From Macrostomum lignano (lineage: Eukaryota), in the NCBI GenBank assembly GCA_002269645.1, contig NIVC01000337.1, forward strand, positions 496,001 through 560,000: a stretch of 64,000 nt of DNA, written 5' to 3'. Of the stretch, positions 5,976 through 63,385 are shown one piece after another. The notes beneath the pieces were generated by a model. The model did not search any database. It was given only the letters and a program-made list of their open reading frames with translations, and was not told the origin of the DNA. Numbering within the stretch: the first letter of the stretch is position 1; every line of letters begins with the position of its first letter. The translations under genes and the position numbers were made by a program.

Positions 5976-6451
5976 TAATATATATATTTGTTTGTTTTTG
6001 ATATATAACTTTCTTATAGTTATATTATAATTTGTCTTCATAGCACAAAAATGAACTTTATTAGTAAAATTTACTACTTATTGGATTAGCAAAGACAAAC
6101 ATAATTGCTATTGGAATTTTTCATTGATTATAGACTATTTGTTATTATTAATATAAATGCTTTAAATAATTACTTATGCCTAATATATAGCCTATCTATA
6201 TATACTTCCTTTACTAATTTAGATATTCTATTAGTATAAATATTTTTAGAGATAATATAATGTCTAGGCTTATATAGGTCTATTTTTGCATTGCACCATA
6301 TATAACATGATTAGGCCTAGTTAAGAGCAAAGCAAAGTACTCATTACATGCATATACCTATAGCCATAGCATAGGCCTTATAAATATAATAATAGATGCA
6401 TAGGCCCTACCCTATACTAAATTATAGCAAATGTTGACTAGTCTTTATATT

Positions 6452-21207: not shown

Positions 21208-21994
21208 TCGGAAGTTTCTTCAGAGTGGCCACAAAGCCGCCTTTGTTGCAGGGAAGCCTGGCTGCCGTTCTCAGATTGCTATAGCTAGGAATGGTCTCAA
21301 GTTCTCTTCCTATACTGACCGCCTTTAGGCTGATTTGCCCAGCTCTCGGACTTAGCACACCGAGATCAGGAGTGCCGGAATTTCGGCAAGCACTAAGCAT
21401 CTCAGTTTGGTCTATGGTGCGTTCAGCTATTGTTATTTTTAGTAGCTCATGCACTTAGCTGATGAAGAGTGAAGACTGAGCAACCGGTTCGAATCAACCT
21501 ATTTTGGACACTCGTCCAGAAGCCCCACATGTAGAATACAGTCTCCCAACCGGTACCAAAAGTTGGTGGTAGCAGCGGAAAGCAAATACAAATTGAAACA
21601 AAAATCGATCCTTCACTACTGACTCAAAACATAAATTGTAACAAATAAATGAAAAGAGTATTTTCTTCAATAGCTGTGTTATTGGCATATTTATGAGCGT
21701 AGATTTATTTCAATCAGATCTGGTCAAGCATTTGTATTTTAAAGATGTATTGAGTAGAAGGCAGTTGTAAAATAAAATAGGAGCGTAACTTTGCCATCAT
21801 TTAAACCGGTCTTCGAGCTTACTAATCTTTACAAAGGTGCACGCCAACATACAGAGAGAGAGAGAGAGCATTGAATTTTGGAAACTAAAAGAGATAATTA
21901 CAAGCTCAAATAATAATGAAAAAAGATACGATTAGCCTGCCTGCAGGGAATTGCATGGTGTGTAAGAGAACAGCAATGCTGAGATTTTCTTGTT

Positions 21995-22350
21995 CCAATT
22001 CCTTATCTGCTCAGCCACCTCACTCCGAATCCTTATCTGTGCAGCCACCCCACTCCGAATCCTTATCTGTGCAGCCACCCCACTCCAATTCCTTATCTGC
22101 TGTGCAGCCACCCCACTCCAATTCCTCCTCTGTGCAGCCACCCCACTCCAATTCCTTATCTGCTGTGCAGCCACCCCACTCCAATTCCTCCTCTGTGCAG
22201 CCACCCCACTCCGATTCCTTATCTGCGCAGCCACCCCACTCCGAATCCTTATCTGTGCAGCCACCCCACTCCGAATCCTTATTTGTGCAGCCACCCCACT
22301 CCGAATCCTTATCTGCGCAGCCACCCCACTCCGATTCCTTATCTGTGCAG
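21995..22350. repeat. 30/33-bp minisatellite (cagccaccccactccgaatccttatctgtg)
   Basis: About 11 copies, giving repetitive ORFs in several frames. Confidence 0.95.
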
Positions 22351-22485
22351 CCAGCCCCATCTATACCAACTACATGCACAACACCAGCAAGGCTACAATT
22401 ATTTTAACTGACCAGTTGTTTTCATGTAAATCCTAACTCAAACTGTAAATTCCCGCCAGTCAACAAGGTGGAAAGCACGATCAGG

Positions 22486-25400
22486 TCACGGCACCGGGGG
22501 CAGGTGCTCCCGCACCGCCTGCAGAATCCGCGCCCTCGGCCCCTTCGGCAGGCCGATGCCACGCAGGCCCCGATCGTCCAGGCACACCAGCTCGCGCACG
22601 CCGATGTTGTGCTGCTCAAAGTGCGGAATGTACTGCCCATAGCCCAGGTAGTCGAGGAACTGTCGCAGGAACGGCGGCTCCGATCCGAAGAACCTGCATT
22701 GAACGATGAGTACGAACTTCATTATTGTATAAATATCACTTCTAAATCTACCATACCATCCCACCTGTAAGCTTCAAACCATCTACTTTCCCACACCTGT
22801 TTTCCCGTACATTTATTTCTCTCACATCCGTTCCCCTCACGTCCCGTTCCCCTCACACCTGTTCTCCTCACACCTGTTCCCCTCACACCTGTTCCCCTCA
22901 CACCTGTTCCCCTCACACCTGTTCCCCTCACACCTGTTCCCCTCACACCTGTTCCCCTCACACCTGTTCCCCTCACACCTGTTCCCCTCACACCGGTTCC
23001 CCTCAGCAGACAATACAAAAAGATAAAACTTCAGCAGACCAGGAGAGCTTCTTGTGCCGCAAAGGGTTCGTCATGTAGCCAAGTATTCCCGGACGGTCTG
23101 GCGGCCAGTCTCGTTGCCATGGCAACCCAGTCCCGATGCCATTGCCGATCGGTCTGAGAAAGTCCGCTTCGTCCCCATCAGCAGACGGCTCGTCCAGGTG
23201 GCCGCTGCCGGCCTGTTGAAGCGACTGCAGGCCGTCCAGCTGCACTTGTTGCGGGTCACTCGAGGACATCAGGCTGAGAGCCTGGTTCAGGCGCTGGCTC
23301 AGGTGGGTCACGTGCCGCTCCAGGCGTCGGACACGATGCTCGAGCGCTCTAGTTGAAATGAATGAATTGGTTTTTTAACTCGTAATTCAAATCTGCTGAC
23401 TTGCCAGACTTATTGATGAACAAAGCTTTCTGCAGCTTCTATGGTATTTTCTATTGTAGCTTGGAATTTAGAGAGAGATAATTATGAAAGATAGTGATGA
23501 GAGGTAATGATAAGATAGATAATGATGAGAGAGATAATGATGAGATAGATAATAATGAGAGAGATAATGATGAGATAGATAATGATGAGATAGATAATAA
23601 TGAGAGAGATAATGATGAGATAGATAATAATGAGAGAGATAATGATAAGATAGATAGTGATGAGAGATAATGATGAGAGAGATAATGATGAGAGAGATAA
23701 TGATGAGAGAGATAATGACGAGAGAGATAATGATGAAAGAGATAATGATGAGAGAGATAATGATGAGAGAGATAATGATGAGAGAGATAATGATGAGAGA
23801 GATAATGATGAGAGAGATAATGATGAGAGAGATAATGATGAGAGAGATAATGATGAGAGAGATAATGATGAGAGAGATAATGATGAGACCACGGCGCACC
23901 ATGCGCATAGTGAAAGTCCGGCATCTATGAAATTGAGGCCTCAATGACAACTTCAATAATTTTGTGAGGTGTTGTGCCATCACCATGTCCACCATTTCCC
24001 TTCTAGCCTGAGTACAAAGCGGCTTCTCCAACCCCCTGGGGCACCTGACGGCCGCCCCGCTGCTGCCAGACGAGGAGCCCGAGAAAGTGTCGGCCTCGTC
24101 ATCGAGACTGTCCGAGCGGGCGGAGGCCGAGCTGCCGTCAGTCGAGCGGCGCCTTCGCCGTCCGCCTCTCCGCCGACTTTTCGAGCCGCCGGACCGTCGC
24201 CGGTCGGACTCGCCTCGCCGATGTCGCCGTTTCGACGACCTGCCGTCCGGCCGGGCGGCGGCTGCGGCGGTGGAGGCGGCGGACTTCCGGCCGAACTGCG
24301 GCGGCGGCGGGGGTGGCGGCGCGGGCGGCGGATGCTTCGGCGGAGGCGGTCGCGGCGGCGGCTGCGGTCGCTCAGGCGGCGCCACCTTCGGGCTGGCGAC
24401 CTCGGAGCTGCCCGGCCGGCTGAAGTCGAGCTCCGCCAACGGTTCCTCCTCGCCTTCGTCGTTGCTGACGCTGGCCAGCCTGGCGTTGTTGGCGGCGGCA
24501 ACCGCGGCAACAGCGGACGCAACGGCATCCCGGTTCATCGCGACCGGCTGGTCGGGCTCGAAGGCTGCGTTGGCCCGGCCGCTGGCGGGGGACTTGGGCT
24601 GATAGCTGGATGGCGGGAGAGACTTGGGCTGATAGCTGGATGGCGGGGGACTTGGGCTGATAGCTGGATGGCGGGGCTGATAGCTGGATGGCGGGAGAGA
24701 CTTGGGCTGATAGCTGGATGGCGGGGGACTTATGCTGATAGCTGGATGGCGGGGCTGATGGCTGGATGGTGGGAGAGACTTGGGCTGATAGCTGGATGGT
24801 GGGGCTGATTTTTTTTATTTATTAGAGGCAGGGGGGTTGTGTGCACCCTGGCGCACTTTAAGCGACACAGGCACACAACCGGCGAGAGGCATTACTGCCC
24901 ATTCCGCCGACTCCCCTGAGCAGGCATACAAGCGCGCGGATACGTTACGCAGGCACACACTCACACAGGAGTGTACAGCGGCCCTAACTTTATCAATTGT
25001 TAGGCATGTACACTTCACTGCGCCTTGGGGGGTTGGCTCTCAAGGCCGTTAATTGCACGAGCAGAGCCAAGCCGAGATTCCAATTCAGCCCCAAATTAAT
25101 GTGACTGCACTTGGAATCGAGCCTGGGTCGCTGGCACACCAGAGCAGCTGCGCTACCGCTGGGCTACGGCCCCCCTTATGGTGGGGCTGATGGCTGGATG
25201 GTGGGGCTGATAGCTGGATGGTGGGGCTGATAGCTGGATGGTGGGGCTGATAGCTGGATGGTGGGGCTGATAGCTGGATGGTGGGGCTGATAGCTGGATG
25301 GTGGGGCTGATAGCTGGATGGTGGGGCTGATAGCTGGATGGTGGGGCTGATAGCTGGATGGTGGGGCTGATGGCTGGATGGTGGGGCTGATAGCTGGATG

Positions 25401-28400
25401 GCGGGGCTGATGGTTGAAAAATCTACTTGGAATTAAGGAGAAAATGGAATTAAAGAGGCCACTTACGCATCCGAGGGTCCCTCCTCCGGCTGCTGGTGTC
25501 CCATCTCGTCTTTGTGCGGCTTCAGCGGCGCCGGCGTCTCAAAGCCGGGAGGCGGCGGCGGGGTCTTCGGCTTTTCCGACTGCGAGCGGGGAAAATCAGC
25601 ATTTTTCTACTAAGAGTAGTGAAACAAAATACGGAAATCAATTTTTTGCTAATAGCAAACTAATCAAGTGCTATTCACCTGTTCGGGCTTCACCCTCAGT
25701 GGCGGAACGGCATGCTTGGCCAGGCCTTCCAGTTTTCCATTAGTCACCTGCAGGCAGGTGAATGTACGCTTGCAAACTTAATTCAACTGTTTTTAACAGA
25801 TTCAGAGGCTTAGCTAGTAGATAAAATTTAATTTAACTTAATTTTAATAGAAAAGAACAAATGAAAATGCTACTGCAAACAACAACCACTCAGGTAAAAT
25901 GAACAACAGGTAGCTTTCTGTATGAAGCAATAAACTGCAGCTGCTGTTAGGAGCAGCAACTAGTTCAAATGTATTTGCTCACTAAATTATACCGCAATAC
26001 GTGTACGACACAGTGGGGCAAGCAAACGGATGCACAAATCAAGCGCAGAAAGAAGAGGCAATGGGAAAAGCATTCAATTTAGCAGGCAAAGCTATATGAA
26101 AAATGATTCTGCATATTAATTGCACTACGAGACGCAATGCAGAAGTAAAAATCAGTCAAAAGCAGAGAAAACAGTTATGAAATTCAGTGCTGATCGGTGC
26201 ACTTCAGAGCTCAAGTCATCCTAATTTGGGCAGCGACGGCAGCTCAGTCGACCTCCTCGACGGTGGGTCCGCCCGCTCGTCCCGCTCGCTGCGGACCCTG
26301 CGGAGGCGGCTGCTGCTGCTGATGCAGCTTGGCCATGAGAGGCGAGCACAGGCTGCTCAGCTGCCGCTGCTGTTCGGCGATCTCGTCCTTGTCGGCCGTC
26401 TGGTTGTTCTCCAGCCAGGAGATGACGCGGTCGCAAGCGGCGGTCACCTCGCCGGCCTCCTTCTCGCCCAGCCGGTCCTTGCAGTCGTTGGCCGCCTGCT
26501 TGTACTGGAAGGCGAGCGATTCCAGCTGGTTGCGGGCCGCCAGGCGCTCGCGGTGCCGCTCGTCCTCCTCGCGGAACTTCTCCGCGTCCCGCACCATCCG
26601 CTCGATCTCGTCCTTCGACAGGCGACCCTTGTCGTTCGTGATTGTGATCTTCTCCTCCTTGCTGGTGCTCTTGTCCTTCGCCGACACCACCAGGATTCCG
26701 TTGGCGTCTACGTCGAAGGTCACCTCGATCTGCGGGACTCCGCGCGGCGCTGGCGGGATGCCGTCCAGGTTGAACCGGCCCAGCAGGTGGTTGTCCCTGG
26801 TCAGCGCCCGCTCGCCCTCAAACACCTGCACCGTGACGCCGCTCTGGTTGTCCGAGTACGTGGTGAACGTCTGCGTCGCCTTGGTCGGGATGCGGCTGTT
26901 CCTCTCCACGATCTTGGTCATCACGCCGCCGGCAGTCTCGATGCCCAGCGACAGCGGAGCCACGTCAAGCAGCAGCAGGTCTTCGATCTTCTCGTCCTTC
27001 ACACCGGTCAGCACCGCCGCCTGCACCGCGGCTCCGTACGCGACCGCCTCGTCCGGGTTGATCGACTTGTTCAGCGTCCGGCCGCCCATGAACTCCTGCA
27101 GCAGCTTCTGCACCTTCGGGATCCTCGTCGATCCGCCGACCAGCACAATCTCGCTGATGCTGCTCTTGTCCATCTTGGCGTCCCTCAGCGCTCGCTCCAC
27201 CGGCTCCATCGTCTGACGGAAGAGGTCAGCGCACAGCTCCTCGAACCGAGCCCTGGTCACGCTGGTGTAAAAGTCGATGCCCTCGAACAGCGAGTCGATC
27301 TCGATGCTCGCCTGCGCTGAGCTGCTCAGAGTTCGCTTCGCTCGCTCAGCCGCTGTGCGCAGCCGCCTCACTGCTCGGGCGTTGCCGCTCATGTCCTTGC
27401 GGTACTTGCGCTTGAACTCCTGGATCAGGTGCTCCACCAGCCGGTTGTCAAAGTCTTCGCCGCCCAAATGAGTGTCACCGGCCGTCGATCGCACCTCGAA
27501 CATGCTGCCCTCCGACACCGTCAGGATGGACACGTCGAATGTGCCGCCTCCCAGGTCGAAGATCAGAATGTTCTTCTCGCCGTCCAGGCTCTTGTCCAGC
27601 CCGTAGGCCAGGGCAGCCGCCGTCGGCTCGTTCACAATCCGCAGCACATTCAGCCCGGCGATCGCACCAGCGTCCTTCGTCGCCTGCCGCTGGCTGTCGT
27701 TGAAGTAGGCCGGCACCGTGATCACCGCGTCAGTCACCTTCTCGCCGAGGTACGCCTCCGCCGTCTCCTTCATCTTGGTCAGCACCATGGCCGAGATCTC
27801 CTCCGGGTAGAAGCTCCGCCTCTCGCCCATGTACTGAACCTCAATCTTCGGCCGCCCACCGTCGTTCGCCACCTTGAACGGCCACAGCTTCATGTCCCGC
27901 TGCACCGTCTCGTCGCTGAACTTCCTCCCGATGAGTCGCTTGGCGTCGAACACCGTGTTCTCCGGGTTCATCGCCACCTGGTTCTTTGCCGCGTCGCCCA
28001 CCAGCCTCTCCGTGTCCGTGAAGGCCACGTAGCTGGGCGTGGTTCGGTTGCCCTGGTCATTGGCGATGATCTCCACTTTGCCTGCCTGGAACACGCCCAC
28101 GCACGAGTACGTGGTGCCCAGGTCGATGCCGATTGCAGGTCCGTTGCTCCTCTTGCCCATGATGCTTCTTCACTGAGCTGAGCTTGACTGAGAAAGAGGC
28201 TTCTTCACTGAGGAAGGCTTGTCTTGCTTTGGATGCTTCTGGATTGCTTTGGTTGCGATCCGAACTGCTTGCTCCTGGGCCAGCAGGACCGCCTGCTTAT
28301 ATAGATTGCAGCTCAGCTTCGAGAAATTTCCAGAATTCCCCATTCACGCCGTCACACATTGGCCCTCTGCTTCGCTGTGCTATTTTTAGAATAGCCTTTC

Positions 28401-31400
28401 TGGAAAATTCTAGAATTAATTAAGAAATGAAATGTGTATAACTCCTGCGTTCAGCTACTAATAGTAGAAATATGAACACAAGGCGTTCCGAAAATGCATA
28501 TTTAAAGGATAAAATTTTCAATTCACTAATTTTCTTTGTTGAAATCCCCTACCGTCCGTGAAGCGCCGCGGAGATCATCCTCCGTGACGGTGACAGACGA
28601 TTCCGCAGGCGCTTTGGGGGCCTGCTGTCGAACATCAGAGGTCGAAGTGCGCGCCTGGGGCTTGGCTGACTGCTGCAAATGAGAGAGATGGCACCATTGA
28701 TTATGTAAAGACACGGGGACTCACGGTGCTTAAATTATTGTTTCCGGTGCAAGATCTTTTTAGACTTACAACAGTGATGAGACGAACTTGACTAGTTTTG
28801 CTTGCCGGCGAAATATTCACTGAAAATGAAAGCAACTTACTGCCCAAATTAACTTTGCAACGTGAAATGTGAAAGTCTCGTCCCATCCCGCCTCTCTCCC
28901 ATCCCGCACCTCTCCCATCCCGCCTCTCTCCTATCCCGCCCCTCCCATCCCGCATCTCTCCCGCCTCTCTCCCATCCCGCCCCTTCTCTTATCCCGCCTC
29001 TCTCCCATCCCGCCCCTTCTCTTATCCCGCCTCTCTCCCATCCCGCCCCTTCTCTTATCCCGCCTCTCTCCCATCCCGCCCCTTCTCTTATCCCGCCTCT
29101 CTCCCATCCCGCCCCTTCTCTTATCCCGCCTCTCTCCCATCCCGCCCCTTCTCTTATCCCGCCTCTCTCCCATCCCGCCTCTCTCCCATCCCGCCTCTCT
29201 CCCATCCCGCCTCTCTCCCATCCCGCCTCTCTCCCATCCCGCCTCTTTCCCATCCCGCCTCTCTCCCATCCCGCCTCTCTCCCATCCCCGCCCCTCTCCC
29301 ATCCCGCCTCTCTCCCATCCCGCCCCTCTCCCATCCTGCCTCTCTCCCATCCCGCCTCTCTCCCATCCCGCCCCTCTCCCATCCCGCCCCTCTCCCATCC
29401 CGCCTCTCTCCCATCCCGCCTCTCTCCCATCCCGCCTCTCTCCCATCCCGCCTCTCTCCCATCCCGCCCCTCTCCCATCCCGCATCTCTCCCATCCCGCA
29501 TCTCTCCCATCCCGCATCTCTCCCATCCCGCATCTCTCCTGCCTCTCTCCCATCCCGCCCCTCTCCCATCCCGCCCCTCTCCCATCCCGCCTCTCTCCCA
29601 TCCCGCATCTCTCCCATCCCGCATCTCTCCCATCCCGCATCTCTCCCATCCCGCCCCTCTCCCATCCCGCATCTCTCCCATCCCGCCTCTCTCCCATCCC
29701 GCCTCTCTCCCATCCCGCCTCTCTCCCATCCCGCCTCTCTCCCATCCCGCCTCTTTAACTAACGTCCCTAGCCTCCCCACCGCGGATCAAATACAAAGAA
29801 TCCTCGTACCGCCATCCTCCAGTCGCTGCTGGCTGTAGACGGGGTCAATTCGGGTCAGCGGTCCAGAAGAGGCCGACTTTCCAGGCGCCAGCGGCTGCTT
29901 GGTGATTGGCAGCCGCTGCTGCTCCTGCTGTTGCTTTTGCTGCTGCTTCTGCTGCTGCTGTCTCTGATGCTGCTGCTTGGTCTGCTGAACGGTTGACCTC
30001 GATTGAACCCGAGCCTGCAGCAGACAGGTGGCTTGAGTGAATTGTGACTCTGGTGCCAGCTTACATATTTAGTTTCCGAGCCCCCAGCATCCCCCGCTTA
30101 CGGCCGCGGCGGCGGCGGCGGCGGCTCTGGCGTCGCAGAAGCTTCGGACCCAGCGGACCAGGTTGAGGGTCTGATAGAGCGAGCCCGACATGATCTCTGC
30201 CGATGGGATGTTTTTATTGTGGGGGCGGTAATTTAATAAATAAAAATATTGATAACAATAAATGACTCAAAAACTACCCATATTTTGCTGCCTAAATTGT
30301 CACCATCGTGTTTAGCATTGTTTGAAAAATTAAATTTGTTAGTGAACTTTTCGTATTGTTGAGCTAAATTTCATTTTTAATTTGTGAAGACGGATGTCAC
30401 TGGGGTTGTGAAGCCGGATGTGACTGGTGGTTTTGAAGCCGGATGTGACTGGTGGTTTTGAAGCCGGATGTGATTGGGGGTTGTGGAGCCGGATGTGACT
30501 GGATTTGTGAAGCCGGATATGATTGGGGGTTGTGAAGCCGAATGTGATTGGGGGTTGTGAAGCCGGATGTGATTGGGGGTTATGAAGCCGGATGTGATTG
30601 GGGGTTGTGAAGCCGGATGTGATTGGGGGTTGTGAAGCCGGATGTGACTGGTGGTTTTGAAGCCGGATGTGATTGGGGGTTGTGAAGCCGGATGTGATTG
30701 GGGGTTATGAAGCCGGATGTGATTGGGGGTTGTGAAGCCGGATGTGATTGGGGGTTTTGAAGCCGGATGTGATTGGGGGTTATGAAGCCGGATATGATTG
30801 GGTTTGTGAAGCCGGATGTGATTGGGTTTGTGAAGCCGGATGTGATTGGGTTTATGAAGCCGGATGTGATTGGGCTCATGAAGCCGGATGTGGTTAAGGT
30901 TGTGAAGCCGGATGTGACTGGGGACAGTGAAGTGGCTCCATGAAAAGCATCGTGCAAACCGCCGTCTCACCTGACGCACTGCTGCTGGGCTGAGTGGCGC
31001 CCATTCGGCACAGGTGAGTCACGCACAGGTCCAGGTTCGCTAGTCGAGCAGCTCGAGTCCCCGGCGACCGATTGAGACCATCGATTGGCTGATCGACTGG
31101 GGGATGAAGGAGGCAGAGCAGCTCAGAGGTTAACGCATCTGACCCTCTCGCACCAGAGATTTTGGGACTCCTGCATCAAAAGCTTGTTGCACGACTCCCT
31201 TCGATGAGCGACAACCCGATGAGGGCGCAATCGTGCTCAGTGGTCAGCGGAATGGGAATTCCTGCTTGCCTCTTCGCTAGCTGCAGGTGACTAGCTAACT
31301 GGTAATATACGAACCATGTGCCTAAGGACTAATTCAACAACTGACAAGCCATGCATTGGCATGCATTGAGTTTAAACCAGAGCGTCACTTACGCCGCTTC

Positions 31401-34265: not shown

Positions 34266-34724
34266 CTACTTCTTCTTGGACACACCGACGGTGCGGCCGC
34301 GGCGGCCGGTGGTCTTGGTGTGCTGGCCGCGCACTCGCAGGGTCCAGTAGTGGCGCAGGCCGCGGTGGGCGCGCACCCGCTTCAGCCGCTCGAGATCCTC
34401 GCGCAGCTTCGTGTCCAGCTGGTTGCTGATGACGTGCCGGTGCTTCATGTCCTTGATGTCCTTCTGCCTGTTCAGAACCCAGTGCGGGATCTTGAACTGC
34501 TGCGGGTTCATGATGATGGTCACCATCTGCTCAATCTCGTCGTCGGACAGCTGGCCGGCCCGACGGTCGCGGCCGATCCCCGCCCGCTTGGCAACCAGGT
34601 CCGAGTAGCGCCTGCCGACACCCTTGATGGAAGTCATGGCTGTGCGGGCCATGACCTTGCCGTCAATGTTGGTGTTGGAGATGCGGATGATGTGCTTGAA
34701 GTTGGCCGGGATGATCAGCGACAT
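34266..34724 (-). CDS. RPS18: 40S ribosomal protein S18 (uS13), intronless and divergent
   Basis: 152-aa ORF with [22 protein letters not shown] and the conserved C-terminus [31 protein letters not shown] pyrimidine (5'TOP-like) motif lies at 34762-34756. Confidence 0.97.
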
Positions 34725-46051: not shown

Positions 46052-47043
46052 TAGAACACACCAACAGAATAGAATAACTGATGCCGATTTCACTCCATGA
46101 ATTATGCTCATACTGTTCATAGAGAAATTCGCAACAAGGTGCCCATAGTCAACTGGTGCCACCTGTTGAAGGTCTAGAAGGTCTGCCTGGGTGAAGGCCA
46201 GTGACCAACGAGACCAGGCGGTGCTTTGTTAGGTCCTCAGCTCCACCAGCTGAACAGTGCACGGACATCGACACGCACAGGTGACCCGAGTTCTGTGCCC
46301 CACCCACCTCACACGCTAGCTTTTTGAAAGTTGGCCGGAGTCTTCATCAGCGTGGGCTCGGGCTTCGGGGTGCGGCTGTGAGCACTGATGAGCGAAGCGG
46401 CAGCGAGTTTTGCTGCAGCCGCTAAGGCTGTTGAAGTCGAAACAGACGCTGTTGCATTTATATTATTTTTGTTGGTGTCATCAAGTACCAATGTCTGCGC
46501 TAACAGCACTCCACCGCGTTACGTCTTGCTGAAGAAGCCGGCACGATCGTCATCATATCGCATGGCTTTTGTGCGATCGAAGCCTAACTCTAGCAGGTCA
46601 CCATAGAACTGCATTGAACCCACATCCACAATTGCACAATTCATGTTCCGGTTAATTAAAATGAAAGAAGCTGCATTGTCTTTCCGTTTTTGGCAGCAAT
46701 ATTGTCTTGAAACATTTTTTTCCTAAATTGGCCTGAGTTCTGAGTCTTTGCGTATGTTATTCAACTCATCTAGCTTGTCGTGCATTGGCGCTTTTCAATA
46801 ATTTATCATTTCTCGAAGGAGAACTTGCACAATAAATTTATTTGTCCAACCACGAAGCAGTTCGTAACGTTGGTAAGTATTTTTGCCAAGAAAAAAAGCC
46901 CTTTACACAAGAGGGACTTCGTTCGTCCTTATTTGTGACATGTATTCGAAGTACATGTACATTCATCTTGCTCGTACGTTTCATAGTCTATTTAACAAAT
47001 AACCAAGTGTTTGTGGGAATTTATTGTGGGAATCACCCACAAA

Positions 47044-47360
47044 TTACTGAGCGTCAGCCTTCAGCTTCACCGCATTGTCCATCGCACGCTTGTTGTATCT
47101 GAAAGTTTGGAATCGAAGCGGGAACTGAGCTTATAGTTACTACAGTGCATACTAAAATGTAAGTTGCAGATGCACTACCTGGGTCTGCCCAGCGAGGCAA
47201 AATATCGGTTGAGATTCAACAGGTACTCCTTCAGCGAGTCCGGATCGTCGAAGGCGTCGGTCGACTGGGCCAGAAAGGCGTGATGGCGGCCGCCTGAGGC
47301 GTAAGATCTGGCGGTACTTGTTGACACGGCAACGAGTAGCAGCAGTTGTAGCCAGCTCAT
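47044..47360 (-). CDS. NPF: Neuropeptide Y/F-family precursor, two exons (47360-47179, 47098-47044)
   Basis: Signal peptide MSWLQLLLLVAVSTSTA and NPF-like core AFDDPDSLKEYLLNLNRYFASLGRPR. An 80-bp phase-2 intron splits the Arg codon (AG|gtagtg...tttcag|A), the intron position typical of NPY/NPF genes. Exon 2 reads YNKRAMDNAVKLKADAQ*. TATATA lies at about 47439-47444. Confidence 0.9.
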
Positions 47361-48076
47361 TGTTTCTTTTGACAGGTTCTCTATGTTGAATAAATCTAGA
47401 ACTGCAGCACACGTGCTGCCATGGCAAGCATTCGAGTCTATATATGATTAGAAAGTTGATTTCGAAGGTGAGTGGTCAGGCCTTGTTACAACCAATCAGA
47501 TCTGATCAGAACGCATTTTGCTGTCCCATGCCCAGTTGCCGGGCACTGATCTGTACCGATTCTCGCCCTATAAATCACGCAATCACTTAGGCGACTCGTT
47601 ACATCCGCAATATTCCTAATCTGTAGCAATATTTTCTCTGCGAAAATTGTTAACTCTGGCTAATACATCGCTGCTCTGAGTCTCAGTATATGGCCGAAGA
47701 AAATCAAACGAATTTACCTGCCCCGAATTTACTCGATTTTCTTTCGAAGCACGCGACACCTTGGCTGCTTTTTGATCAGAGTTCTCCAAGGCCCACCAAT
47801 ATGGTAGTGACGTCAATTGCAGCTCGAAAGAGAGTATTTTAGAAATTCGACACGAGCATAAATTAAATACTTTATTTTTCTTTGAGACATCCTTTGAGAC
47901 CCGGAACTACTTCATTGTTATTAAATATGCTCAAATCGTATTGCTTTTATTGATATTGTTTGTGACAACTAAACCTAAAAGACAACAAACTAAATACAAC
48001 TATTAGCCATGGGAAATTCATTGCTAAAAACAGCCCACGAGTTCGGGGCCAGCCCGGCTCGAGACCCTTGTGAGCG

Positions 48077-51000
48077 TCAGCGTCTCCAAACGCCAAGCCG
48101 GCCGATGGCGTCTTTGTTGTCGGCTCGGTGACTTCCCCGGAGCAGCAGGGCGTCGCTCAGGCGACGAGTCTCCGCCTCCAGCAGCGCCGCGTCCAGCCGG
48201 GGCTCCCGGCTGACGGTCGCCAGCGAGGCGTCGAGTAGGCCGCGGATTTCCATCAGCTCGCCGCCAGCGCGACCGTCGCCTCCGAGCTGGCGATGGCGTC
48301 GCAGCGACGACGACCGCCTCGATGCTCGCCGATGCTCCTCCTCAGCCGCTTCCTCCTTCTGCTGCTGCTGCACCTTCAGGGCTGAAATCTGAGGACAGGA
48401 GTTTCCATTCCCGTTATGAAATTCGCCTGAGATTCGATCCCAGATGTACAGCCAAATGTCACTGGAAGTCAAATGTCACTGGCAGTCAAATGTCACTGGC
48501 AGTCAAATGTCACTGACAGTCAAATGTCACTGGTAGTCAAATGTCACTGACAGTCAAATCTCACTGGCAGTCAAATGTCACTGACAGTCAAATGTCACTG
48601 ACAGTCAAATGTCACTGGTAGCCAAAAGTCACTGACAATCAAATGTCGCTGACAGTCAAATGTCACTGGCAGCCAAAAGTCACTGACAATCAAATGTCAC
48701 TGACAGTCAAATGTCACTGGCAGCCAAAAGTCACTGACAATCAAATGTCGCTGACAGTCAAATGTCACTGGCAGCCAAAAGTCACTGACAATCAAATGTC
48801 ACTGACAGTCAAATGTCACTGGTAGCCAAAAGTCACTGACAATCAAATGTCGCTGACAGTCAAATGTCACTGGCAGCCAAAAGTCACTGACAATCAAATG
48901 TCACTGGCAGCCACATGTCACTGACAATCAAATGTCACTGGCAGCCACATGTCACTGACAGCCAAATATTTCAATGCTGCAATCAAAGCAGAAAAGGCAA
49001 TAGGCTGGCGCAATATCTAAACACGCGCACCTGCTGCTCCAAGGCTCGGACACGCAGCCTCTGCAGCCGCTCCCGGCCTTCGAGCGCTCTCTCAGCGCGC
49101 TGGTGCGCCGCTCGCAGCCGGTCGGACTCCTGCTCGGCGTCCTCCAGTCGCCTGCGCGAGTCACGCAGCTGCCGCCGCAGGCTTTCATTCTCTTCCTCCA
49201 GGCGGCGCGTTGCCGAGGCGAAGCCGTCTCGCTCGCGCTCGGCCGCCTGTTCCACCCGTCAATGTTGTTTTTGGTGGGATTTTTCTTGCCATCAGCCCTG
49301 GAACCCCCCCCCCCACAATGTCTAGGCTGCTTCGGCTAAAGAACCGAGGAATAAGGCGAGTGAAATCGATGAGTCGCCTCGGGGTGGCAATCCTTGCTCA
49401 AGGTGGAAAAGCTCGGTCGGCATTTCGAAAGATGGAGCGCTTAAAAGAGGAACTTTTAAACTGAGTTTCAACTTTCAAAAAAAAAAGAAAAGGAAAGCTT
49501 TTCCATCGACTGCGGAGTGGGAGAATCGGAAAAAGAGACTCAAAAATAGGGCATTAGGGTCCATTTGCTTTCAGAAAATCCATGCCCGCTTCTGATCCTC
49601 TGACAACTGAGTCTCGCTGGCTCATGACCGCAAGGCGTGCGCCGGCGAAGTGCCAGCTTCATTCAAGAGCTGATGGGGCAGTAATCGGCTTTTTTTTGGG
49701 GGAGAGCATCGGCCTCGAACACTTACAGCTTTCTCGCGCCAATGTAGGTAGGAATTCTATTTTCTCATAAGGTAGGCTCGTAATAACATGCAGGAGAATG
49801 TCCAAAAATACCTCATGACGATATTCCACTGACGCGGATGCAGATTCCAGCTCGGCGTCAAACTGACGTTCACCTCTGGAGTGGCCGAACAGCTGAGTCT
49901 GCGAGGTGGATAGTTGATAACGTTTACAGCATAACCAGTTTATCATCAAATTATTGTTCAGTCAAAATACTCGTATCCTCAGACATCCTGACATTACCTG
50001 ATATTCGTTCAGTTACAGCTAGCTACTTGCTGCTCTGGTGCAGGTTTTCCTCGGGATCGGGGTGTCTTTGGGATCGGGGTGTCCTTGGGATCGGGGTGTC
50101 TTTGGGATCGGGGTGTCTTTGGAATCGGGGTGTCTTTGGGATCGGGGTGTCTTTGGAATCGGGGTGTCTTTGGGATCGGGGTGTCTTTCGGATCGGGGTG
50201 TCTTTGGGATCGGGGTGTCTTTGGAATCGGGGTGTCTTTGGGATCGGGGTGTCTTTGGGATCGGGGTGTCTTTGGGATCGGAGTGTCTTTGGGATCGGGG
50301 TGTCTTTGGGATCGGGGTGTCTTTGGGATCGGGGTGTCTTTGTAATCAAGGTGTCTTAGGGGGTATCTTTGGGATCGGGGTGTCTTTGGAATCGAGGTGT
50401 CTTAGGGGGTGTCTTTGGGATCGGGGTGTCTTTGGAATCGGGGTGTCTTAGGGGGTGTCTTTGGGATCGGGGTGTCTTTGGGATCGAAGTGTTTTTGGGA
50501 TCGGGGTGTCTTTGGGATCGGGGTGTCTTTGGGATCGGGGTGTCTTTGGGATCGGGGTGTCTTTGGGATCGGGGTGTCTTTGGGATCGGGGTGTCTTTGG
50601 GATCGGGGTGTCTTTGGGATCGGGGTGTCTTTGGGATCGGGGTGTCTTTGGAATCGGGGTGTCTTAGGGGGTGTCTTAGGGATCGGGGTGTCTTTGGAAT
50701 CGGGTGTCTTTCGGATCGGGGTGTCTTTAGAATCGGGGTGTCTTTGGAATCAGGGTGTCTTTGGGATCGGGGTGTCTTTGGGATCGGGGTGTCTTTGGGA
50801 TCGGGGTGTCTTTGGAATCGGGGTGTCTTTGGGATCGGGGTGTCTTTGGGATCGGGGTGTCTTTGGGATCGGAGTGTCTTTGGGATCGGGGTGTCTTTGG
50901 GATCGGGGTGTCTTTGGGATCGGGGTGTCTTTGGAATCAAGGTGTCTTAGGGGGTATCTTTGGGATCGGGGTGTCTTTGGAATCGAGGTGTCTTAGGGGG

Positions 51001-52553
51001 TGTCTTTGGGATCGGGGTGTCTTTGGAATCGGGGTGTCTTAGGGGGTGTCTTTGGAATCGGGGTGTCTTTGGGATCGAAGTGTTTTTGGGATCGGGGTGT
51101 CTTTGGGATCGGGGTGTCCTTGGGATCGGGGTGTCTTTGGGATCGGGGTGTCTTTGGAATCGGGGTGTCCTTGGAATCGGGGTGTCTTTGGAATCGGGGT
51201 GTCTTTGGAATCGGGGTGTCTTTGGGATCGGGGTGTCTTTGGGATCGGGGTGTCCTTGGAATCGGGGTGTCTTTGGAATCGGGGTGTCTTTGGAATCGGG
51301 GTGTCTTTGGGATCGGGGTGTCTTTGGGATCGGGGTGTCTTTGGGATCGGGCTGTCTTTGGGATCGGGGTGTCTTTGGAATCGGGGTGTCTTAGGGGGTG
51401 TCTTAGGGATCGGGGTGTCTTTGGGATCGGGGTGTCTTTGGGATCGGGGTGTCCTTGGGATCGGGGTGTCTTTGGAATCGGGGTGTCTTTGGAATCGGGG
51501 TGTCTTTGGAATCGGGGTGTCTTTGGGATCGGGGTGTCTTTGGAATCGGGGTGTCTTTGGGATCGGGGTGTCTTTGGAATCGGGGTGTCTTTGGGATCGG
51601 GGTGTCTTTGGAATCGGGGTGTCTTTGGGATCGGGGTGTCTTTGGGATCGGGGTGTCTTTGGGATCGGGGTGTCTTTGGAATCGGGGTGTCTTTGGAATC
51701 GGGGTGTCTTCGGAATCGGGGTGTCTTTGGGATCGGGGTGTCTTTGGGATCGGGGTGTCTTTGGGATCGGGGTGTCTTTGGGATCGGGGTGTCTTTGGGA
51801 TCGGGGTGTCTTTGGGATCAAGGTATGAATCCTTGATCAAGGATGGATCAAGGATCAAGGATCAAGATTGAGGTTATGTTCAATTCGAGTAGCATACGGG
51901 GTCAAATCATGGTAGAGTTGGTTTCTTCATGTACAAAAACTCCTGTAAACATCTCAAAGATAAATGGTAACTGCAGTTTTATAAGGATTTTAGAAATATT
52001 TTTCCAGCAAAACACGAATTCTGAAACCCTGAAACAGCTCAGCTGTTTCTCACATTGGAATGACGAACGGACGGATGAAGCGGCGGCGGCTGGGACACCC
52101 ACTGCCCATCGTCAGCATCTTCATCGTTCGCCTGTCGCTGGCAAGTGCAGACTAAAAGCGGACTCGTGGCCGAGTTCTTCCGCGGTGGCACCTGCCGGTG
52201 GTCGATCCTGCCAGCCGTGGGCGCGTCGTCATCTTCAGCGCCTCCGCGCCCGGCGTCAGACATGTCCGCAGGCAGGGAGCAGCTGGACGAGGCGCTGTTG
52301 ACGACGGCTCCTCCGAAACCGGAGGAAGCGTCGAATGCTCGAGGCGGCAGCGCAAAGGTGAGCGCTGGCGGCGTCTGCGGACCCAGGTCGGCCAGGTAGA
52401 ACTCGGGCCGCACGCGGATCAGCGTGCTCGCGGCAACGGCTGCAGAAGTCGGGACCTGCGATTTGTGCTGCTTCTGCTGCTGATTCATGTCCGGATTGGA
52501 GTTGAGCACTCTCAGGCCACATCCGCGTTTGTCTTCGCTCTTTAAATCCAGGT
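48077..52553 (-). CDS. Probable multi-exon coiled-coil protein. Supported exons: 52553-52054, 49898-49812, about 49250-49031, 48388-48077
   Basis: Heptad-rich segment RRLEEENESLRRQLRDSRRRLEDAEQE. Phase-0 junction EQQ|gtgcgc...cctcag|ISALK and a phase-0 exon at 49898-49812. The link between 49812 and about 49250 could not be resolved. Confidence 0.5.
48460..48965. repeat. 17-bp minisatellite (gtcaaatgtcactgaca) with a 51-bp higher-order period, intronic
   Basis: About 30 copies; its ORF peptide has a 17-aa period. Confidence 0.95.
50050..51830. repeat. 17-bp minisatellite (ggggtgtctttgggatc), about 100 copies, intronic
   Basis: Direct periodicity; explains the many overlapping 17-aa-period ORFs. 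Confidence 0.97.
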
Positions 52554-54474: not shown

Positions 54475-57400
54475 ATGACGGTCCGGAACAGAACTCCATT
54501 TGCTACTGGGGTGGCTGCGGCGCTTGTTCTAGTGCTGCTGACGACAATTTCTGCTGCAGAAGCTCAAACGGGTAATAAATTATCTATAGTTCAAGATCCG
54601 CACCCGCTTCAACTTATCCGCATCACAATGAGTAGACGATTTTGGAAAAAGTTCTCTTACTCGTATTGAATCTAAAATATTTTTCTAACATCTATTTCAG
54701 TGCCATGTGCATCTGTGAGATGCTTAAAGATACAAACTATAATTCTTTATAATATTTCAGATCAAACTGAAACTTCAGGAGTAGCAGGTACAACACAAGT
54801 TATGCAGCCAGCGATAAATGAGGAACAAACAACTGAACAGCCAATAGCAACAGAAGAATTAACGACAAACAACGGACCAACGACTACAACTGAGGAACCA
54901 ACGACTGCAACTGAGGAACCAACTACTACAACTGAGGAACCAACTACTACAACTGAGGAACCAACTACTACAACTGAGGAACCAACTACTACAACTGAGG
55001 AACCAACTACTACAACTGAGAAACCAACTACTACAACTGAGGAACCAACTACTACAACTGAGGAACCAACTACTACAACTGAGGAACCAACGACTACAAC
55101 TGAAGAACCAACGACAACAATTGAGGAACCAACTACTACAACTGAGGAACCAACGACTACAACTGAAGAACCAACGACAACAATTGAGGAACCAACTACT
55201 ACAACTGAGGAACCAACTACTACAACTGAGGAACCAACCACTACAACTGAGGAACCAACGACAACAATTGAGGAACCAACTACTACAACTGAGGAACCAA
55301 CTACTACAACTGAGGAACCAACTACTACAACTGAGGAACCAACTACTACAACTGAGGAACCAACTACTACAACTGAGGAACCAACGACTACAACTGAAGA
55401 ACCAACGACAACAATTGAGGAACCAACTACTACAACTGAGGAACCAACTACTACAACTGAGGAACCAACGACTACAACTGAGGAACCAACGACAACAATT
55501 GAGGAACCAACTACTAAAACTGAGGAACCAACTACTACAACTGAGGAACCAACTACTACAACTGAGGAACCAACTACTACAACTGAGGAACCAACGACTA
55601 CAACTGAGGAACTAACGACTACAACTGAGGAACTAACGACTACAACTGAGGAACCAACTACTACAACGGAGGAACCAACGACTACAACGGAGGAACCAAC
55701 GACTACAACTGAGGAACCAACGACTACAACTGAGGAACCAACGACTAAAACAGAGGAACCAACTAAGGAATCCATGGCAACAACGGAATCAGGGAGTAGG
55801 GTAATAACTACAATGAATACGCCTCCAGGATCTCGAGGACGGCAGAACGAGACTGGAAGCGGAAGAAGCGCTGGTCAGCTCAACCCGCTTGTACCAACCA
55901 GTCAACCAACACCCAGCGATTCGATGCCAATATTAAGTAAGGGTGTTCTAATAAAAATAATTAGCATTAGTAATCTGTAGACTAAAAGCTATTTCTGTAT
56001 AATGTTAATATTTCCTAGATTTCGAGCCATGTCGTCAGGAGACAAGTCAAGGCGATCACATCAACGGGATGTCAGACTCGAGAGCCATCACAGTCTATGG
56101 CTACCAGCCCAATCAAGGTCGCTGCATGCCCTACAACTACTACGGTAGCGCTGGCTCCTCGAACCGCTTTGACTCCATAGAGTCATGTGAGAATTCTTGT
56201 CAGAGACGCTTTGAACGTGAGTTTCGCCAACCTTGCTATTTTTGCTTGGTGGGTTCTTCACTGCTACGAGCTTACATGCATACAAAGCAAATGAATGACT
56301 TGGGTTGTGGGAAAAATGCACTAGGGACACTAATGAGTCACGTTGCATTAAAATCAACTTCGTTAGAAAGCAGCAACATCAACTGCTCGTTCGAGGAGGC
56401 AACGGATTGCATCGACTACGACAGTTCGAAGTACTCAAGTAGTTCTCTTGTTTACTACTACGTGAAGAAGATCGGCACCTGCATCCAAGCTGTGCTCAAG
56501 GACACGGCCGAGTGCAGCAGGCTGGGAGAGACCAAGTTCTTCCAGCAGAAGCAAGCTTGCAGCGACCTGTGCGTGCGGCCCGCAACTGACAGTGTCATTC
56601 AGGGTGCGAGCCAATTTGCGCATTATAACTAAACGTTGAATCGACAACCTAAATTGAAGCCAACGTGACTCCCAATTCCAGATCGATGCTTTGCCGTTTT
56701 CAAATCCGAGAAGGACGGCACATTTTGCCCGTTCCGAGAGAAGAAGTACTTCTACAACGAGCAAACAAAGCAGTGCATCAGTCGGCAAGCGTGCGGCACG
56801 GAGGTTGTCAGCAACAGTTTTGCTTCCCTGGAGGAGTGTCAGAAGTTCTGTCTGCCCCGCTCTGTTGCAGGTCTGGGTCCATCTCAGTTCTACCTCTTAC
56901 TTTGGATGGCCAGGTTGTTTGCCATCTGTCGATGGGCAGCATAGGAAACGGAGGCAGATACAGAGACAAGATCAATGGCTCACGGAATGAAGGGCACACA
57001 ACCATATTTAAGCATGCAGTGTTGAACAAAGCAGCTAAAAATCTCTGCTTTAAGGATGGAGACACGATGTAGGAATCTAAACACAGGCAAACAAGTAGAA
57101 TGCCGAAATTAGTAAGAGAGAAACAGTGATCACTGTTTACCAACTTCAACCTGGCACACAAATCGCAAGGCAATAGTCGGGCCACAGCTCCCCTCGCCTC
57201 TGTGGAACCGGTTCCGTTCCAAACCATTCGAATGAAACTTGTTGTTGCAGAGCTCTGCAGCCTTCCGCGAGATCCCGGCTCGTGCGAATTCCAAGGGAAA
57301 AAGCTGCTCCGCTACTACTACGACTCGGAGCAGCTCAAATGCCAGCCGTTCAGCTATTCCGGTTGTCATGGAAACAAAAATCGTTTCTTTGATGAGGCCG

Positions 57401-60400
57401 ACTGCCGAAAGACTTGCGTTGTAGCGGCAGCTACAGCGCCGCCGCCGCGAACGTCGCTGAACAGCAGCCGACTGCCGACAGCGGATGATCAGCCGCCACT
57501 CCTAGTCGAAGGCAGCGTCTGCAGACTGCCACCGTCCGCTGGCTCCTGTCCTATGACGGACGGAAAACGACTGTTAAGGTACTTTTACGACCCAACGAAG
57601 GATGAATGCCGCACGTTTAAATACACTGGCTGCGGTGGCAACGGGAACAACTTCGAGACTGGCGAGGACTGTCATTACGCCTGCAGGAACTACAGTAAGG
57701 GAAGGGTGCTTATGAATAGTAGTAGTTTAAGTATCGTCTGGCTATTAATTTGCTACATGTAGTTCGTATATCTAAGAAGCAATTTCAATCAGTTTATTTC
57801 AGTTTGACGCAAACTAGGCTCGGTTTCAATGGCACAATAATTGAACTCTGATCCCCCCAGACTCGAGCCGACAGCCTTTGTGCCAGAGCACAGCACCGGC
57901 ATGTCCACCCGGAAGCCTGTGCGAAGCGCACCAGAAGCTTTGTAGCGGCAGCTGGATGGCCTTGGACATGATGCAGGACCGCTGCCAGCTGCCCAAAGAC
58001 GCTCCAACACCGCCGAGCGCCGAAACCGAAACTCGGAATACTGCCAATAGCCAGGGACAAGGATTCTACTTTGATTATAAAACTTTCAACTGCTACCAGT
58101 CCATGGGTAGACACGGAATCGGCATGAACTTCTTCAAATCGTGGGACGAATGCAAGAGCTTCTGCTATCCGGAAAAGAGACACCTAATCTGCTTCCTGGA
58201 GAGCGACCCCGGCCCTTGCAAGGTCAACCTGAAGCGATACTACTTTAATCAGACGACGGGCGCCTGTGAGGAGATGACATACGGTGGCTGCCTTGGCAAT
58301 CGAAATCGCTTCTTAACGATGAGCGAGTGCAAAAACATGTGCGAGGACCAGCTGCAAAGGGATCCCTGTTTGTACCCACCGTCTCACGGCCAGATCTGCC
58401 CCGGACAGACCCCGGAAGTCTCACGAAAGGTAATGTACTTTTACCGAGGTAGCACCAAAAATTGTTACGAGTTCACCTATAATGGCTGCGGTGGCAGTCG
58501 GAACCTGTTTGCCAGCGGGGAGCAATGCAAGGAGCAGTGCAGAGCCAGCCGAGTCGTCAAGATGCGAAGGCCGCGCGGAAAGGCTTCCGCTCGCTCGGCC
58601 GCACCCACCGCAGCTCGCCTACTAGCCACCACGACAAGCGCCACTACGACGACATCTGATCCAACCACAACAGCCATGGAAGCACCGACGCCGACAACAA
58701 CTTTCGGCATGGAGAAGTGCCTATCAGAGTCACCTGAAGTGGTTACCAAAACGCCAGCGGCCTCTTGTCCGGACGGAAAGCTCCAAAAGGTGTTCGTGTT
58801 CAAGAAAGAGACATTCAGCTGCGAAGTCTTCCAATCGGCGCTTGAATTCTGCGGCGACACGGAGCTGCGCGGTGCCGCCTTCTGGAGCCGCTCGGCTTGC
58901 GAGAGCGCCTGTCCAGTGGCGACGAAGAGTAAGCCGTGTCTGACTCAGTACTTCTATATGTGCTTCTAAACTGTATTGAAGTAGTTTTAAGGAGATTGAG
59001 GCTTGGATTCATCGCGAAAACTGTTGTCACGATTTTTTAAAGTGATGAAAGGCCACTCCGCTAAAGTCCGCGTTAATTATTTCAGAGTGCCCAACCAGCT
59101 CGCCATGCCCGACAGACTGCAAGTACAAGCGCAGCGTTCAGCAGCTTGACAGCAGCGGCTGCCTCATCTGCCGATGCTTTGATCCTTGCGAAGGAAAATG
59201 CCCGCCTACCGAGCGCTGCAAGGCCAGCTGCAACGATGAGCAGTGCTCCGAGGTCAATGCAAAGTGTTTAGCGTGTGAGTTTTCATCTGAGTAGTTAAGC
59301 TGGCATATCTATTTTGTTGGATTGCATTCTGCTAGGGCTACACTCACCAGCTTGTTTCTCAATCTCTACACTCTACACTCAATCAGCTTGCTTATCGAAA
59401 GTCGAAATAAAAAGCCGTAGATATTACTCCTGAGGTGAAGAATAAAAAGTAGTATATACTATTTCACCATTTTCACTACTTAGTGCTGAAGTTCTAATAG
59501 AATTTCGCGGCTTCAATGGTAGGCAGTTATGAATCCCTTGCATTCAGCCAATTTTCAACGAAAAACTCCGCAGTGACTCGCTCGGGCGACTGTCCGCCGC
59601 TGAAAATCTCTGGCGACGCCTGCGAGCGCCAGTGCGACTTTGACCTCGACTGCCCGGACGAGAGGCAAAAGTGCTGCCAGAGCGGCTGCGCCCAAGGCCG
59701 CTCCTGCCAGAATCCCTACCTGACGCCGCCGCCGCCGACAACGAATCGGCCGCCGCAGGTCCCGTGCGACAAGACGCCCCACGGCTGCTGCCCGGACGGA
59801 GAGACTACGGCGGACAACCCGAGTCTGACTAACTGCCCGCCGTTCGCTCCCAAAAGCAAGTTTCCCAGCCCCATGCAGAGCATCGTCGTGCTCGAGGGCG
59901 TTCGACTGAAATTGGACTGCGGCTTCTTGGCGGTGCCAAAGCCGACTGTGATGTGGCTCAAGGACAACCGGCCGGTGGTGCAAGACCAGCGAGTCCGCAT
60001 TGATGGCCAGAAACTGAAGTTGCGCCAAGTCACGGAATCCGACTCGGGCGAATACGAATGCTCCGCTTACAACTCAGAGGGCCAAGCCGCGCGCAAGATC
60101 AGTCTGGCAGTTCAGGTGCCCGCGACCATCCTGAGCCTCGAGGCGCCCGAGCAGCCGCTGCTGGTGCGGGGCGAACAAATCCAGCTGATCTGCAACGCTA
60201 CTGGGAAGCCAAAGCCGGAAATCCGCTGGCTGAAGTACGATCAGACGATTCCAGGGGAAATAGTGAGTTTGCTTCTAGCACACTCTGCTTCTATTCCACA
60301 TAGATAGCCGTAGATAAAACTAACACTCGAAACTCAAAACGAACGCAGGCCGACACACTGAATCTGACAGTCGGCCCCGCCGCAGTGGCTGAGTACACCT

Positions 60401-62295: not shown

Positions 62296-63019
62296 CCCAA
62301 GCCTCCTAGATCTAAAAAAAAAAAATAATAACTAATTCAACACAACTAATGGTTGCTTAGTCCACATAATTCACGGCTGATTAATCTGTTTAAAGAGTAT
62401 CATTTCAATACAGTTTATTAACTAACAAAATCAATGCACAGCACCATACAGAAATCAAGGACAACAGGTGCAACAGTTGCTACCAGTGGTCCTTGACCCA
62501 AATACTCGTATAAGAAATTTCAATCAACAGGTATCTATGCGATAAGGCTCTAACTACAGGCTAGGGTGGATAAATATTTTATACTCAATTATGCTAAGGC
62601 TACATAAGATTTCTTATATAAGCAACTAAAATTCTATAAAACCTGCCTTGGCTAACCAAAATGGTTTATAGACTAAAATATCAGTACACCTTGATTGTCA
62701 ATTATAAACGGACTACGAGAAAACAAAATTTCACAATGAAAGGAAAGAATGCTTCAATGCATATTTCCAATCACTGAATAACAATTTGACATGCAATCAA
62801 AATGGTCTGTTTTGGAATCTGAAACTAGATATCATAACAAAATTATGTTGCCATGGGGATTTACAGAGCAGCTCAAGGACGAATCCTAGAAAGGATCTCA
62901 GATTCGAAGCGAGAGAATCTACACTCGCAGATTCCCAGACGGCAGTGAGCTGCGAAATCCGCTATGCTAGACGTGAAAGGAACTCGAAATCCTCTCATTC
63001 ATCATCTGATCCTCTCAGG

Positions 63020-63385
63020 AACCCTAAATCCGCTCCAGTAGGAACCCTAAATCCGCCCCCCAGTAGGAACCCTAAATCCGCCCCCCCAGTAGGAACCCTA
63101 AATCCGCCCCAGTAGGAACCCTGAATACGCCCCCTAGTAGGAACCCTAAATCCGCCCCCGCCCCAGTAGGAACCCTAAATCCGCCCCATCCCAGTAGGAA
63201 CCCTAAACCCGCCCCAGTAGGAACCCTAAATCCGCCTAAGTAGTATAGGAACCCTAAATCCGCCCCCCAGTAGGAACCTCAAATCCGACATAGTAGGAAC
63301 CCTAAATCCGCCCCCCAGTAGGAATCTCAAATCCGACATAGTAGGAACCCTAAATCCCCCCAGTAGAAACCCCAAATCCGCCCTT
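63020..63385. repeat. Minisatellite of about 24 bp (cagtaggaaccctaaatccgcccc)
   Basis: About 15 imperfect copies between the convergent papilin-like and GSR 3' ends. Confidence 0.9.

Follow-up and report, generated by a model that had tools for sequence, protein, structure and literature searches.

A neuropeptide F-type prohormone gene of Macrostomum lignano with an asparagine codon at the amidation position

Introduction

What becomes of an NPY/NPF-type prohormone gene when the codon for its amidation-donor Gly has been replaced? From flatworms to humans, NPY/NPF-type ligands are regarded as unable to do without their C-terminal amide, and peptidylglycine alpha-amidating monooxygenase requires a C-terminal Gly. 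The question is raised by a locus of Macrostomum lignano that lies within a stretch of 64,000 nucleotides (contig NIVC01000337.1, positions 496,001 to 560,000; hereafter the window), where the gene Mlig008652 has Asn at that position. A well-conserved and expressed member of the family that is predicted to be non-amidatable is a natural experiment on the amide rule, and with RNAi and transgenesis available in M. lignano a test of the rule is practical. An active peptide would suggest a receptor specificity so far unrecognised, or else an endogenous antagonist; the feeding and reproduction pathway concerned is under discussion as a target for anthelmintics. Should the peptide be inactive, the locus would be a snapshot of a dying member of an expanded neuropeptide family, probably lost through one tandem mutation at the most critical codon. 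In either case, the automatic label 'Neuropeptide F' conceals the Asn difference.

Results

The gene lies on the minus strand of the window at 47360..47044, exactly from start codon to stop codon, and consists of two exons that give 78 codons when spliced. A pattern scan showed a TATA box (TATATAG) at 47438..47444, an in-frame stop upstream of the ATG at 47450, and an AATAAA polyadenylation signal at 47020..47025, 19 nt past the stop codon. The transcript-derived, 5'-partial model PAA85310.1 translates the 5' UTR in frame (AAVLDLFNIENLSKET-M...), giving this UTR a minimum extent of 47361..47408; its first base, 47408, is ~34 nt downstream of the TATA box, a spacing that fits the expectation for a TATA-directed start. 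The coding part of exon 1 (47179..47360, with the ATG at 47360) encodes Met1-Pro60, contributes bases 1 and 2 (AG) of the Arg61 codon, ends ...CTG GGC AGA CCC AG, and carries the signal peptide and most of the NPF-like peptide. A phase-2 intron of 80 nt (47099..47178, GTAGTG...TTTCAG) follows inside the Arg61 codon, and an unspliced reading of exon 1 runs immediately into a stop (AGG TAG). The coding part of exon 2 (47044..47098) supplies the third base of Arg61, then Tyr62, Asn63, Lys64-Arg65, A66-Q78 and TAA (47046-47044), and reads A TAC AAC AAG CGT GCG ATG GAC ... GCT CAG TAA. The preliminary description, made from the letters of this DNA, had read R-Y-N-K-R after a phase-2 intron between 47044 and 47360, and this is how the minus strand reads. 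The AAC codon of Asn63, at the amidation-donor Gly position, occupies 47092..47094; it is the same in a second locus of the genome (see below), and it is GGC in the paralogue Mlig022158. The adjoining AAG CGT (47086..47091) encodes Lys64-Arg65, a dibasic prohormone-convertase site that is kept in both loci.

The spliced product has 78 amino acids (MSWLQLLLLVAVSTSTARSYASGGRHHAFLAQSTDAFDDPDSLKEYLLNLNRYFASLGRPRY-N-KR-AMDNAVKLKADAQ), with the layout MSWLQ...LNRYFASLGRPRYNKRAMDNAVKLKADAQ. Judged by eye, its signal peptide has the hydrophobic core LQLLLLVAV followed by small residues (STSTA / SYA) and ends at about A17 or A21. No basic cleavage site is present in the precursor upstream of K64-R65, which leaves one long peptide directly after the signal peptide. 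The C-terminal portion of the prohormone reads ...LNRYFASLGRPRY-N-K-R, after which comes a C-flanking peptide of 13 residues (A66-Q78). From the established secretory-peptide pathway, we would expect loss of the signal peptide (after about Ala17 or Ala21), a cut by a PC2-type convertase behind Lys64-Arg65, and the trimming of Lys-Arg by a carboxypeptidase. This would release a peptide of 42-46 residues, ...YFASLGRPRYN, with a free carboxylate, together with the 13-residue C-flanking peptide. The predicted monoisotopic masses are 4811.36 Da (S22-N63) and 5288.59 Da (R18-N63) for the free acids and 1373.70 Da for A66-Q78. As the amidating enzyme needs a C-terminal Gly and Asn stands in its place here, we predict the Mlig008652 product to be a non-amidatable ...GRPRYN-OH peptide.

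Several lines of comparison place the gene in the NPY/NPF family. A precomputed match to Pfam PF00159 (pancreatic hormone peptide) was found on a protein that is one residue different from the window product (P0001). The best PDB match was neuropeptide F of Moniezia expansa (1K8V, E = 6.8e-4), with precursor residues 30-62 aligned to peptide residues 6-39 and Tyr62 placed on the terminal Phe39. The pancreatic-hormone signature, [FY]x3[LIVM]x2Yx3[LIVMFY]xRxR[YF], fits the precursor at residues 46-62. Exhaustive phmmer searching against 1.84 billion representatives gave 8 matches only, with the best E down to 1.8e-11; the relevant ones were NPF-type precursors of M. lignano, of krill and of an annelid-type metagenomic host. 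The phase-2 intron in the Arg codon lies at the same position in a Mlig022158 locus (L006) and in the annelid-type NPF locus (L002), and Collins et al. (2010, PMC2953531) describe it in the npy genes of planarians and vertebrates. With the Pfam and 1K8V matches and the shared intron, the earlier assignment of the gene to this family, family-typical intron included, stands: by its sequence Mlig008652 is confirmed as an NPY/NPF-family prohormone gene and not a chance open reading frame. The amidation-donor Gly that should follow the terminal Phe or Tyr is absent, with Asn in both the window and the second locus, so that the product cannot be a canonical NPF/NPY-amide, though the gene is a homologue by descent.

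A metagenomic protein ending GRPRYNTTS (P0009) was considered as a second Gly-less NPF and rejected as an unspliced gene call. In its DNA (L002), exon 1 ends CCT CG|GTATAAT..., so that 'RYNTTS' comes from reading on into the intron; ~1.5 kb downstream lies the true exon 2, which reads A TTC GGT CGG (R-F-G-R). The NPF exons of this locus are at 3501-3722 and 5195-5251, and its true product ends RPRF-G-R. About 20 further metagenomic matches from the profile search (P0020-P0040) likewise cover exon 1 alone, ending or going astray at GRPR; they confirm the fixed intron position and are uninformative on the Gly. Many metagenome 'proteins' carrying PF00159 are therefore exon-1-only or read-through NPF calls from annelid-type animal host DNA, and their odd C-termini are artefactual.

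The same protein has been deposited more than once. The window product is identical to UniRef entry A0A1I8J1G8 ("Neuropeptide F") from M. lignano and to the matching 78 residues of PAA85310.1 (94 aa; Mlig008652g1), and PAA91104.1 (Mlig008652g2) differs from it solely by A66V. Two M. lignano gene sets, deposited independently of each other, contain identical or near-identical RYNKR proteins. The second locus, Mlig008652g2 on NIVC01000094.1, differs from the window at 10/721 aligned bases and has the same AAC codon, GT..AG splice sites, reading frame and KR. The GenBank annotation of M. lignano was built solely by placing RNA-seq and de novo transcript assemblies on the genome (Wudarski et al. 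2017, PMC5730564). Since its models are transcript-derived, the junction 47179|47098 has transcript support at the level of the models. Mlig008652 is thus transcribed, the deposited models for both loci coming from assembled transcripts only. An exact look-up in the contig index with the 78-aa product and with the RPS18 of the window had neither on record. Public databases already list the gene under automatically assigned names, and we found no paper with the peptide or the gene identifier: GRPRYN, FASLGRPRY, RPRYNKR and Mlig008652 were not met in print in our literature search, and an earlier mention may be contained in McVeigh et al. 2009, who reportedly mined M. lignano ESTs.

Comparison of the two loci showed both to be intact, each having the 78-codon open reading frame, ATG, stop, signal peptide, GT..AG, KR, TATA and AATAAA; neither has a frameshift, a premature stop, a lost splice site or a lost start. 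The coding differences between them are 3 synonymous and 1 nonsynonymous (pN/pS = 0.11, Fisher p = 0.048, from four differences only), and the sole nonsynonymous one, A66V, is in the C-flanking peptide, outside the NPF-like peptide. The flanks of the loci are ~1.5-2.5% diverged, the same as the gene, with no conservation peak over it. As the peptide region has ~100 nonsynonymous sites and ~2 changes would be expected there under neutrality, the zero that we saw is not significant. Against annelid-type, two limpet, krill and cestode (Moniezia) NPFs, the Mlig008652 peptide scored at least as high as every Gly-containing paralogue. Judged by these alignments, the peptide apart from the Gly is not degenerate and is at least as canonical as any paralogue. 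Word-seeded, exhaustive phmmer and profile searches recovered no orthologue from another species; apart from M. lignano copies, the protein searches returned nothing but annelid-type fragments of exon 1, molluscs and krill.

The M. lignano genome has at least four NPY/NPF gene groups, and the three others keep the Gly. The closest paralogue, Mlig022158 (PAA78650.1; three loci), ends ...LFDDPEVLRQYLRSLNGHYATLARPRY-GKR, has 37% overall identity to the window product and is annotated in UniRef as 'Pro-neuropeptide Y' or 'Pancreatic hormone'. It shares with the window gene two exons, a short phase-2 intron after ...CCC AG, an exon 2 of the form A TAC xxx AAG CG, and the core FDDP..L..YL..LN...A.L.RPRY; its own exon 1 ends AGG CCC AG, its intron is ~83 nt long and its exon 2 starts A TAC GGC AAG CGC. 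The paralogue differs in having GGC (Gly) where the window gene has AAC, and hence in being amidatable, and it does not fully fit the strict family signature, with His where Tyr is expected, whereas the window gene does. Mlig009822 has three loci with three peptide copies each (3x SRPRF-GKR), and Mlig007142/Mlig003006 have two or three copies (2-3x SRP[R/H]F-GKR). All RxR[F/Y] motifs in the other M. lignano NPY/NPF genes recovered (10/10) are followed by GKR. As three other gene groups keep the Gly, M. lignano is not without amidated NPF/NPY, which would be supplied by Mlig022158 (...ARPRY-GKR), Mlig009822 and Mlig007142/003006; the redundancy of these amidatable groups would permit the loss of the amide in Mlig008652.

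NPF/NPY precursors normally hold one peptide copy. The prohormones of Mlig009822 (P0005/P0012/P0013), Mlig007142 (P0007/P0014) and Mlig003006 (P0015) have 2-3 tandem, shortened NPF-like copies each (...YLxSxSRPRF-GKR), the third copy of Mlig003006 reading RPHF. Mlig009822 and Mlig007142 apparently adjoin one another, having consecutive accessions and contigs that agree in length. A similar precursor, with 3x GRPRF-GKR, is found in the krill Meganyctiphanes norvegica (P0004/P0011).

At the homologous site Mlig022158 reads TAC GGC AAG CGC, and the change in the window gene is therefore GGC to AAC. The preliminary description had argued that Gly to Asn needs two substitutions. The two altered bases are borne out by the paralogue; two separate events are not required, because GG to AA is CC to TT on the opposite strand and could have arisen as a single tandem mutation, with no need for a long elapsed time. 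The replacement of GGC (Gly) by AAC (Asn) at the amidation-donor codon would predate the recent duplication of the genome region that holds Mlig008652.

Elsewhere in the window, an intronless gene at 26244-28160 (-) encodes a cytosolic HSP70 of 638 aa (E = 0 to human HSPA2/HSPA1A) and lies in the most GC-rich part, between tandem-repeat arrays. A second intronless gene, at 34266-34724 (-), encodes ribosomal protein S18/uS13 (152 aa), matching the 40S S18 of solved ribosomes over its full length (E = 1e-66). An ABCA-type lipid transporter accounts for the very long exons at 15817-21207 (-), with open reading frames of 697, 307 and 566 aa; the longest of these frames aligns through its residues 222-697 with the second half of human ABCA1/ABCA4 (E = 3.5e-89). 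A run of exons at 56069-60307 (+) has multiple Kunitz domains (TFPI-like, E = 4e-32), then cysteine-rich and Ig-like sequence, a composition suggestive of a papilin-like extracellular matrix protein. The segment directly upstream of the Kunitz exons, 54876-55765, is a 21-bp unit repeated 42 times and gives a mucin-like open reading frame, (TTTEEPT)n. At 47571-47810 (+), there is a TATAAAT at ~47571 and an ATG at 47691 that opens a short open reading frame, ~330 nt from the NPF gene start codon; these may mark a neighbouring gene with divergent transcription and an intergenic region in common with the NPF gene.

The load of short-period tandem arrays in the window is unusually high (examples: 17 bp x 106, 16 bp x 55, 21 bp x 39), and these arrays are the source of many long spurious open reading frames. 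Tandem-array or low-complexity regions are at 1-6000, 6608-7426, 21994-23888, 28876-29754, 30382-30923, 48448-48967, 50053-51819 and 63017-63383. The first 6 kb is strongly strand-skewed and of low complexity, with a GC skew of 0.47-0.68. This load fits the repeat-rich genome of M. lignano (PMC5730564).

Discussion

The preliminary description had offered an antagonist, a ligand for a diverged receptor and a decaying paralogue as possible readings. Our comparisons lean weakly toward retention of Mlig008652. We give about an even chance to the reading that the gene is still maintained and not dead, and that it encodes a secreted, non-amidated NPF-like peptide of altered pharmacology, acting as a weaker, a different-receptor or a competing ligand; the retained function is what we infer from an intact and canonical precursor. 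The more specific proposal, that ...GRPRYN-OH is a functional hormone of M. lignano, either through a diverged receptor of its own or in endogenous competition with amidated NPF/NPY, we regard as doubtful. If true, it would be a rare case of an NPY/NPF-type ligand that works without a C-terminal amide.

The most serious alternative is early-stage decay, in which loss of the Gly inactivated the peptide, the gene is still transcribed and looks intact only because too little time has elapsed, and all NPF/NPY signalling is carried by the amidated paralogues. We consider this a substantial possibility, short of an even one. In vertebrate Y receptors the C-terminal amide (Tyr36) contacts the binding pocket directly and is described as essential (PMC10297964); an Asn-extended free acid may be simply inactive. 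Decay is also favored by the redundancy of the NPF/NPY family in this genome, by a two-locus comparison too shallow to prove constraint, with gene and flanks equally ~2% diverged, and by the protein searches, which gave no orthologue to mark the Asn as old. Several points speak against decay: both loci are intact from TATA through AATAAA; of their four coding differences three are synonymous, and the single nonsynonymous one lies outside the NPF-like peptide; that peptide is no less canonical than any paralogue with Gly; and the Asn is older than the divergence of the two loci.

It is very unlikely that the bioactive product is another part of the precursor, such as the C-flanking peptide AMDNAVKLKADAQ, which would make the loss of the amidation signal irrelevant. 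NPY-type precursors regularly encode a C-flanking peptide, whose functions have been called elusive (PMC2953531), and the KR that would free it is retained in both loci; against this, the only amino-acid difference between the loci (A66V) falls there, and this part has no similarity to the C-flanking parts of the paralogues or of other NPF precursors.

Restoration of the Gly in the RNA, through A-to-I editing of both adenosines or through a rare splice to an undetected exon, would give an amidated peptide and appears highly improbable to us. An AAC codon with two such edits does read GGC, and genome-guided transcript models, which take their letters from the genome, would conceal editing (method: PMC5730564). 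The 251-nt stretch of pre-mRNA that surrounds the codon, however, showed no advantage in folding over shuffled sequences (z = -0.38), and the AAC codon is in an unpaired loop of the predicted structure. Our search for an alternative exon 2 agrees with the earlier report that no better RFGKR or RYGKR exon lies downstream: within 7 kb no AG is followed in the right phase by R-[F/Y]-G, and the few [FY]G[KR][KR] strings across the whole window are in unrelated contexts, none of them plausible.

That errors of sequencing or assembly produced the Asn codon, which the preliminary description had already judged unlikely for a single base-call error, is a negligible prospect and is ruled out in practice, as the same AAC stands in the window and in a second locus ~2% diverged from it, RYNKR proteins are found in two separately deposited gene sets, and we found no point in its favor.

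Comparison with known systems

The window gene resembles flatworm NPF (Moniezia expansa, 1K8V) and spiralian NPFs in having a signal peptide and then a single long peptide with the C-terminus ...L..YL..LN.YFA..GRPR[F/Y], and in alignments of 25-28 residues with NPFs of cestode, annelid-type, limpet and krill origin its peptide is identical at 12-17 positions. Canonical NPFs differ from it in reading RPRF-G-R/KR (annelid-type locus, Patella, Lottia and krill) where the window gene has Asn, and in being C-terminally amidated on a terminal Phe, whereas the terminal aromatic residue of the window peptide is Tyr.

A non-canonical member has been described in the planarian Schmidtea mediterranea, where npy-11, an 'atypical neuropeptide Y', is likewise part of an expanded flatworm NPY family, has a non-canonical C-terminus and keeps the gene organisation of the family (PMC2953531). 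In that work a conserved site for alpha-amidation is marked for planarian npy genes in a figure legend. The two genes differ in what they have lost: npy-11 is without the C-terminal aromatic residue and retains the amidation site, whereas Mlig008652 keeps the aromatic residue and loses the amidation site.

Bovine seminalplasmin/PYY2 is non-amidated and has a new function, being an NPY-family duplicate that is no longer an amidated Y-receptor ligand. Mlig008652 is like it in being a duplicate of an NPY-family gene that would stand outside amidated signalling. The names PYY2 and seminalplasmin are equated in PMC2698874. PYY2 differs in being a vertebrate gene with reproductive-tract expression and a strongly diverged C-terminal region, whereas Mlig008652 differs from its family only at the single Gly position.
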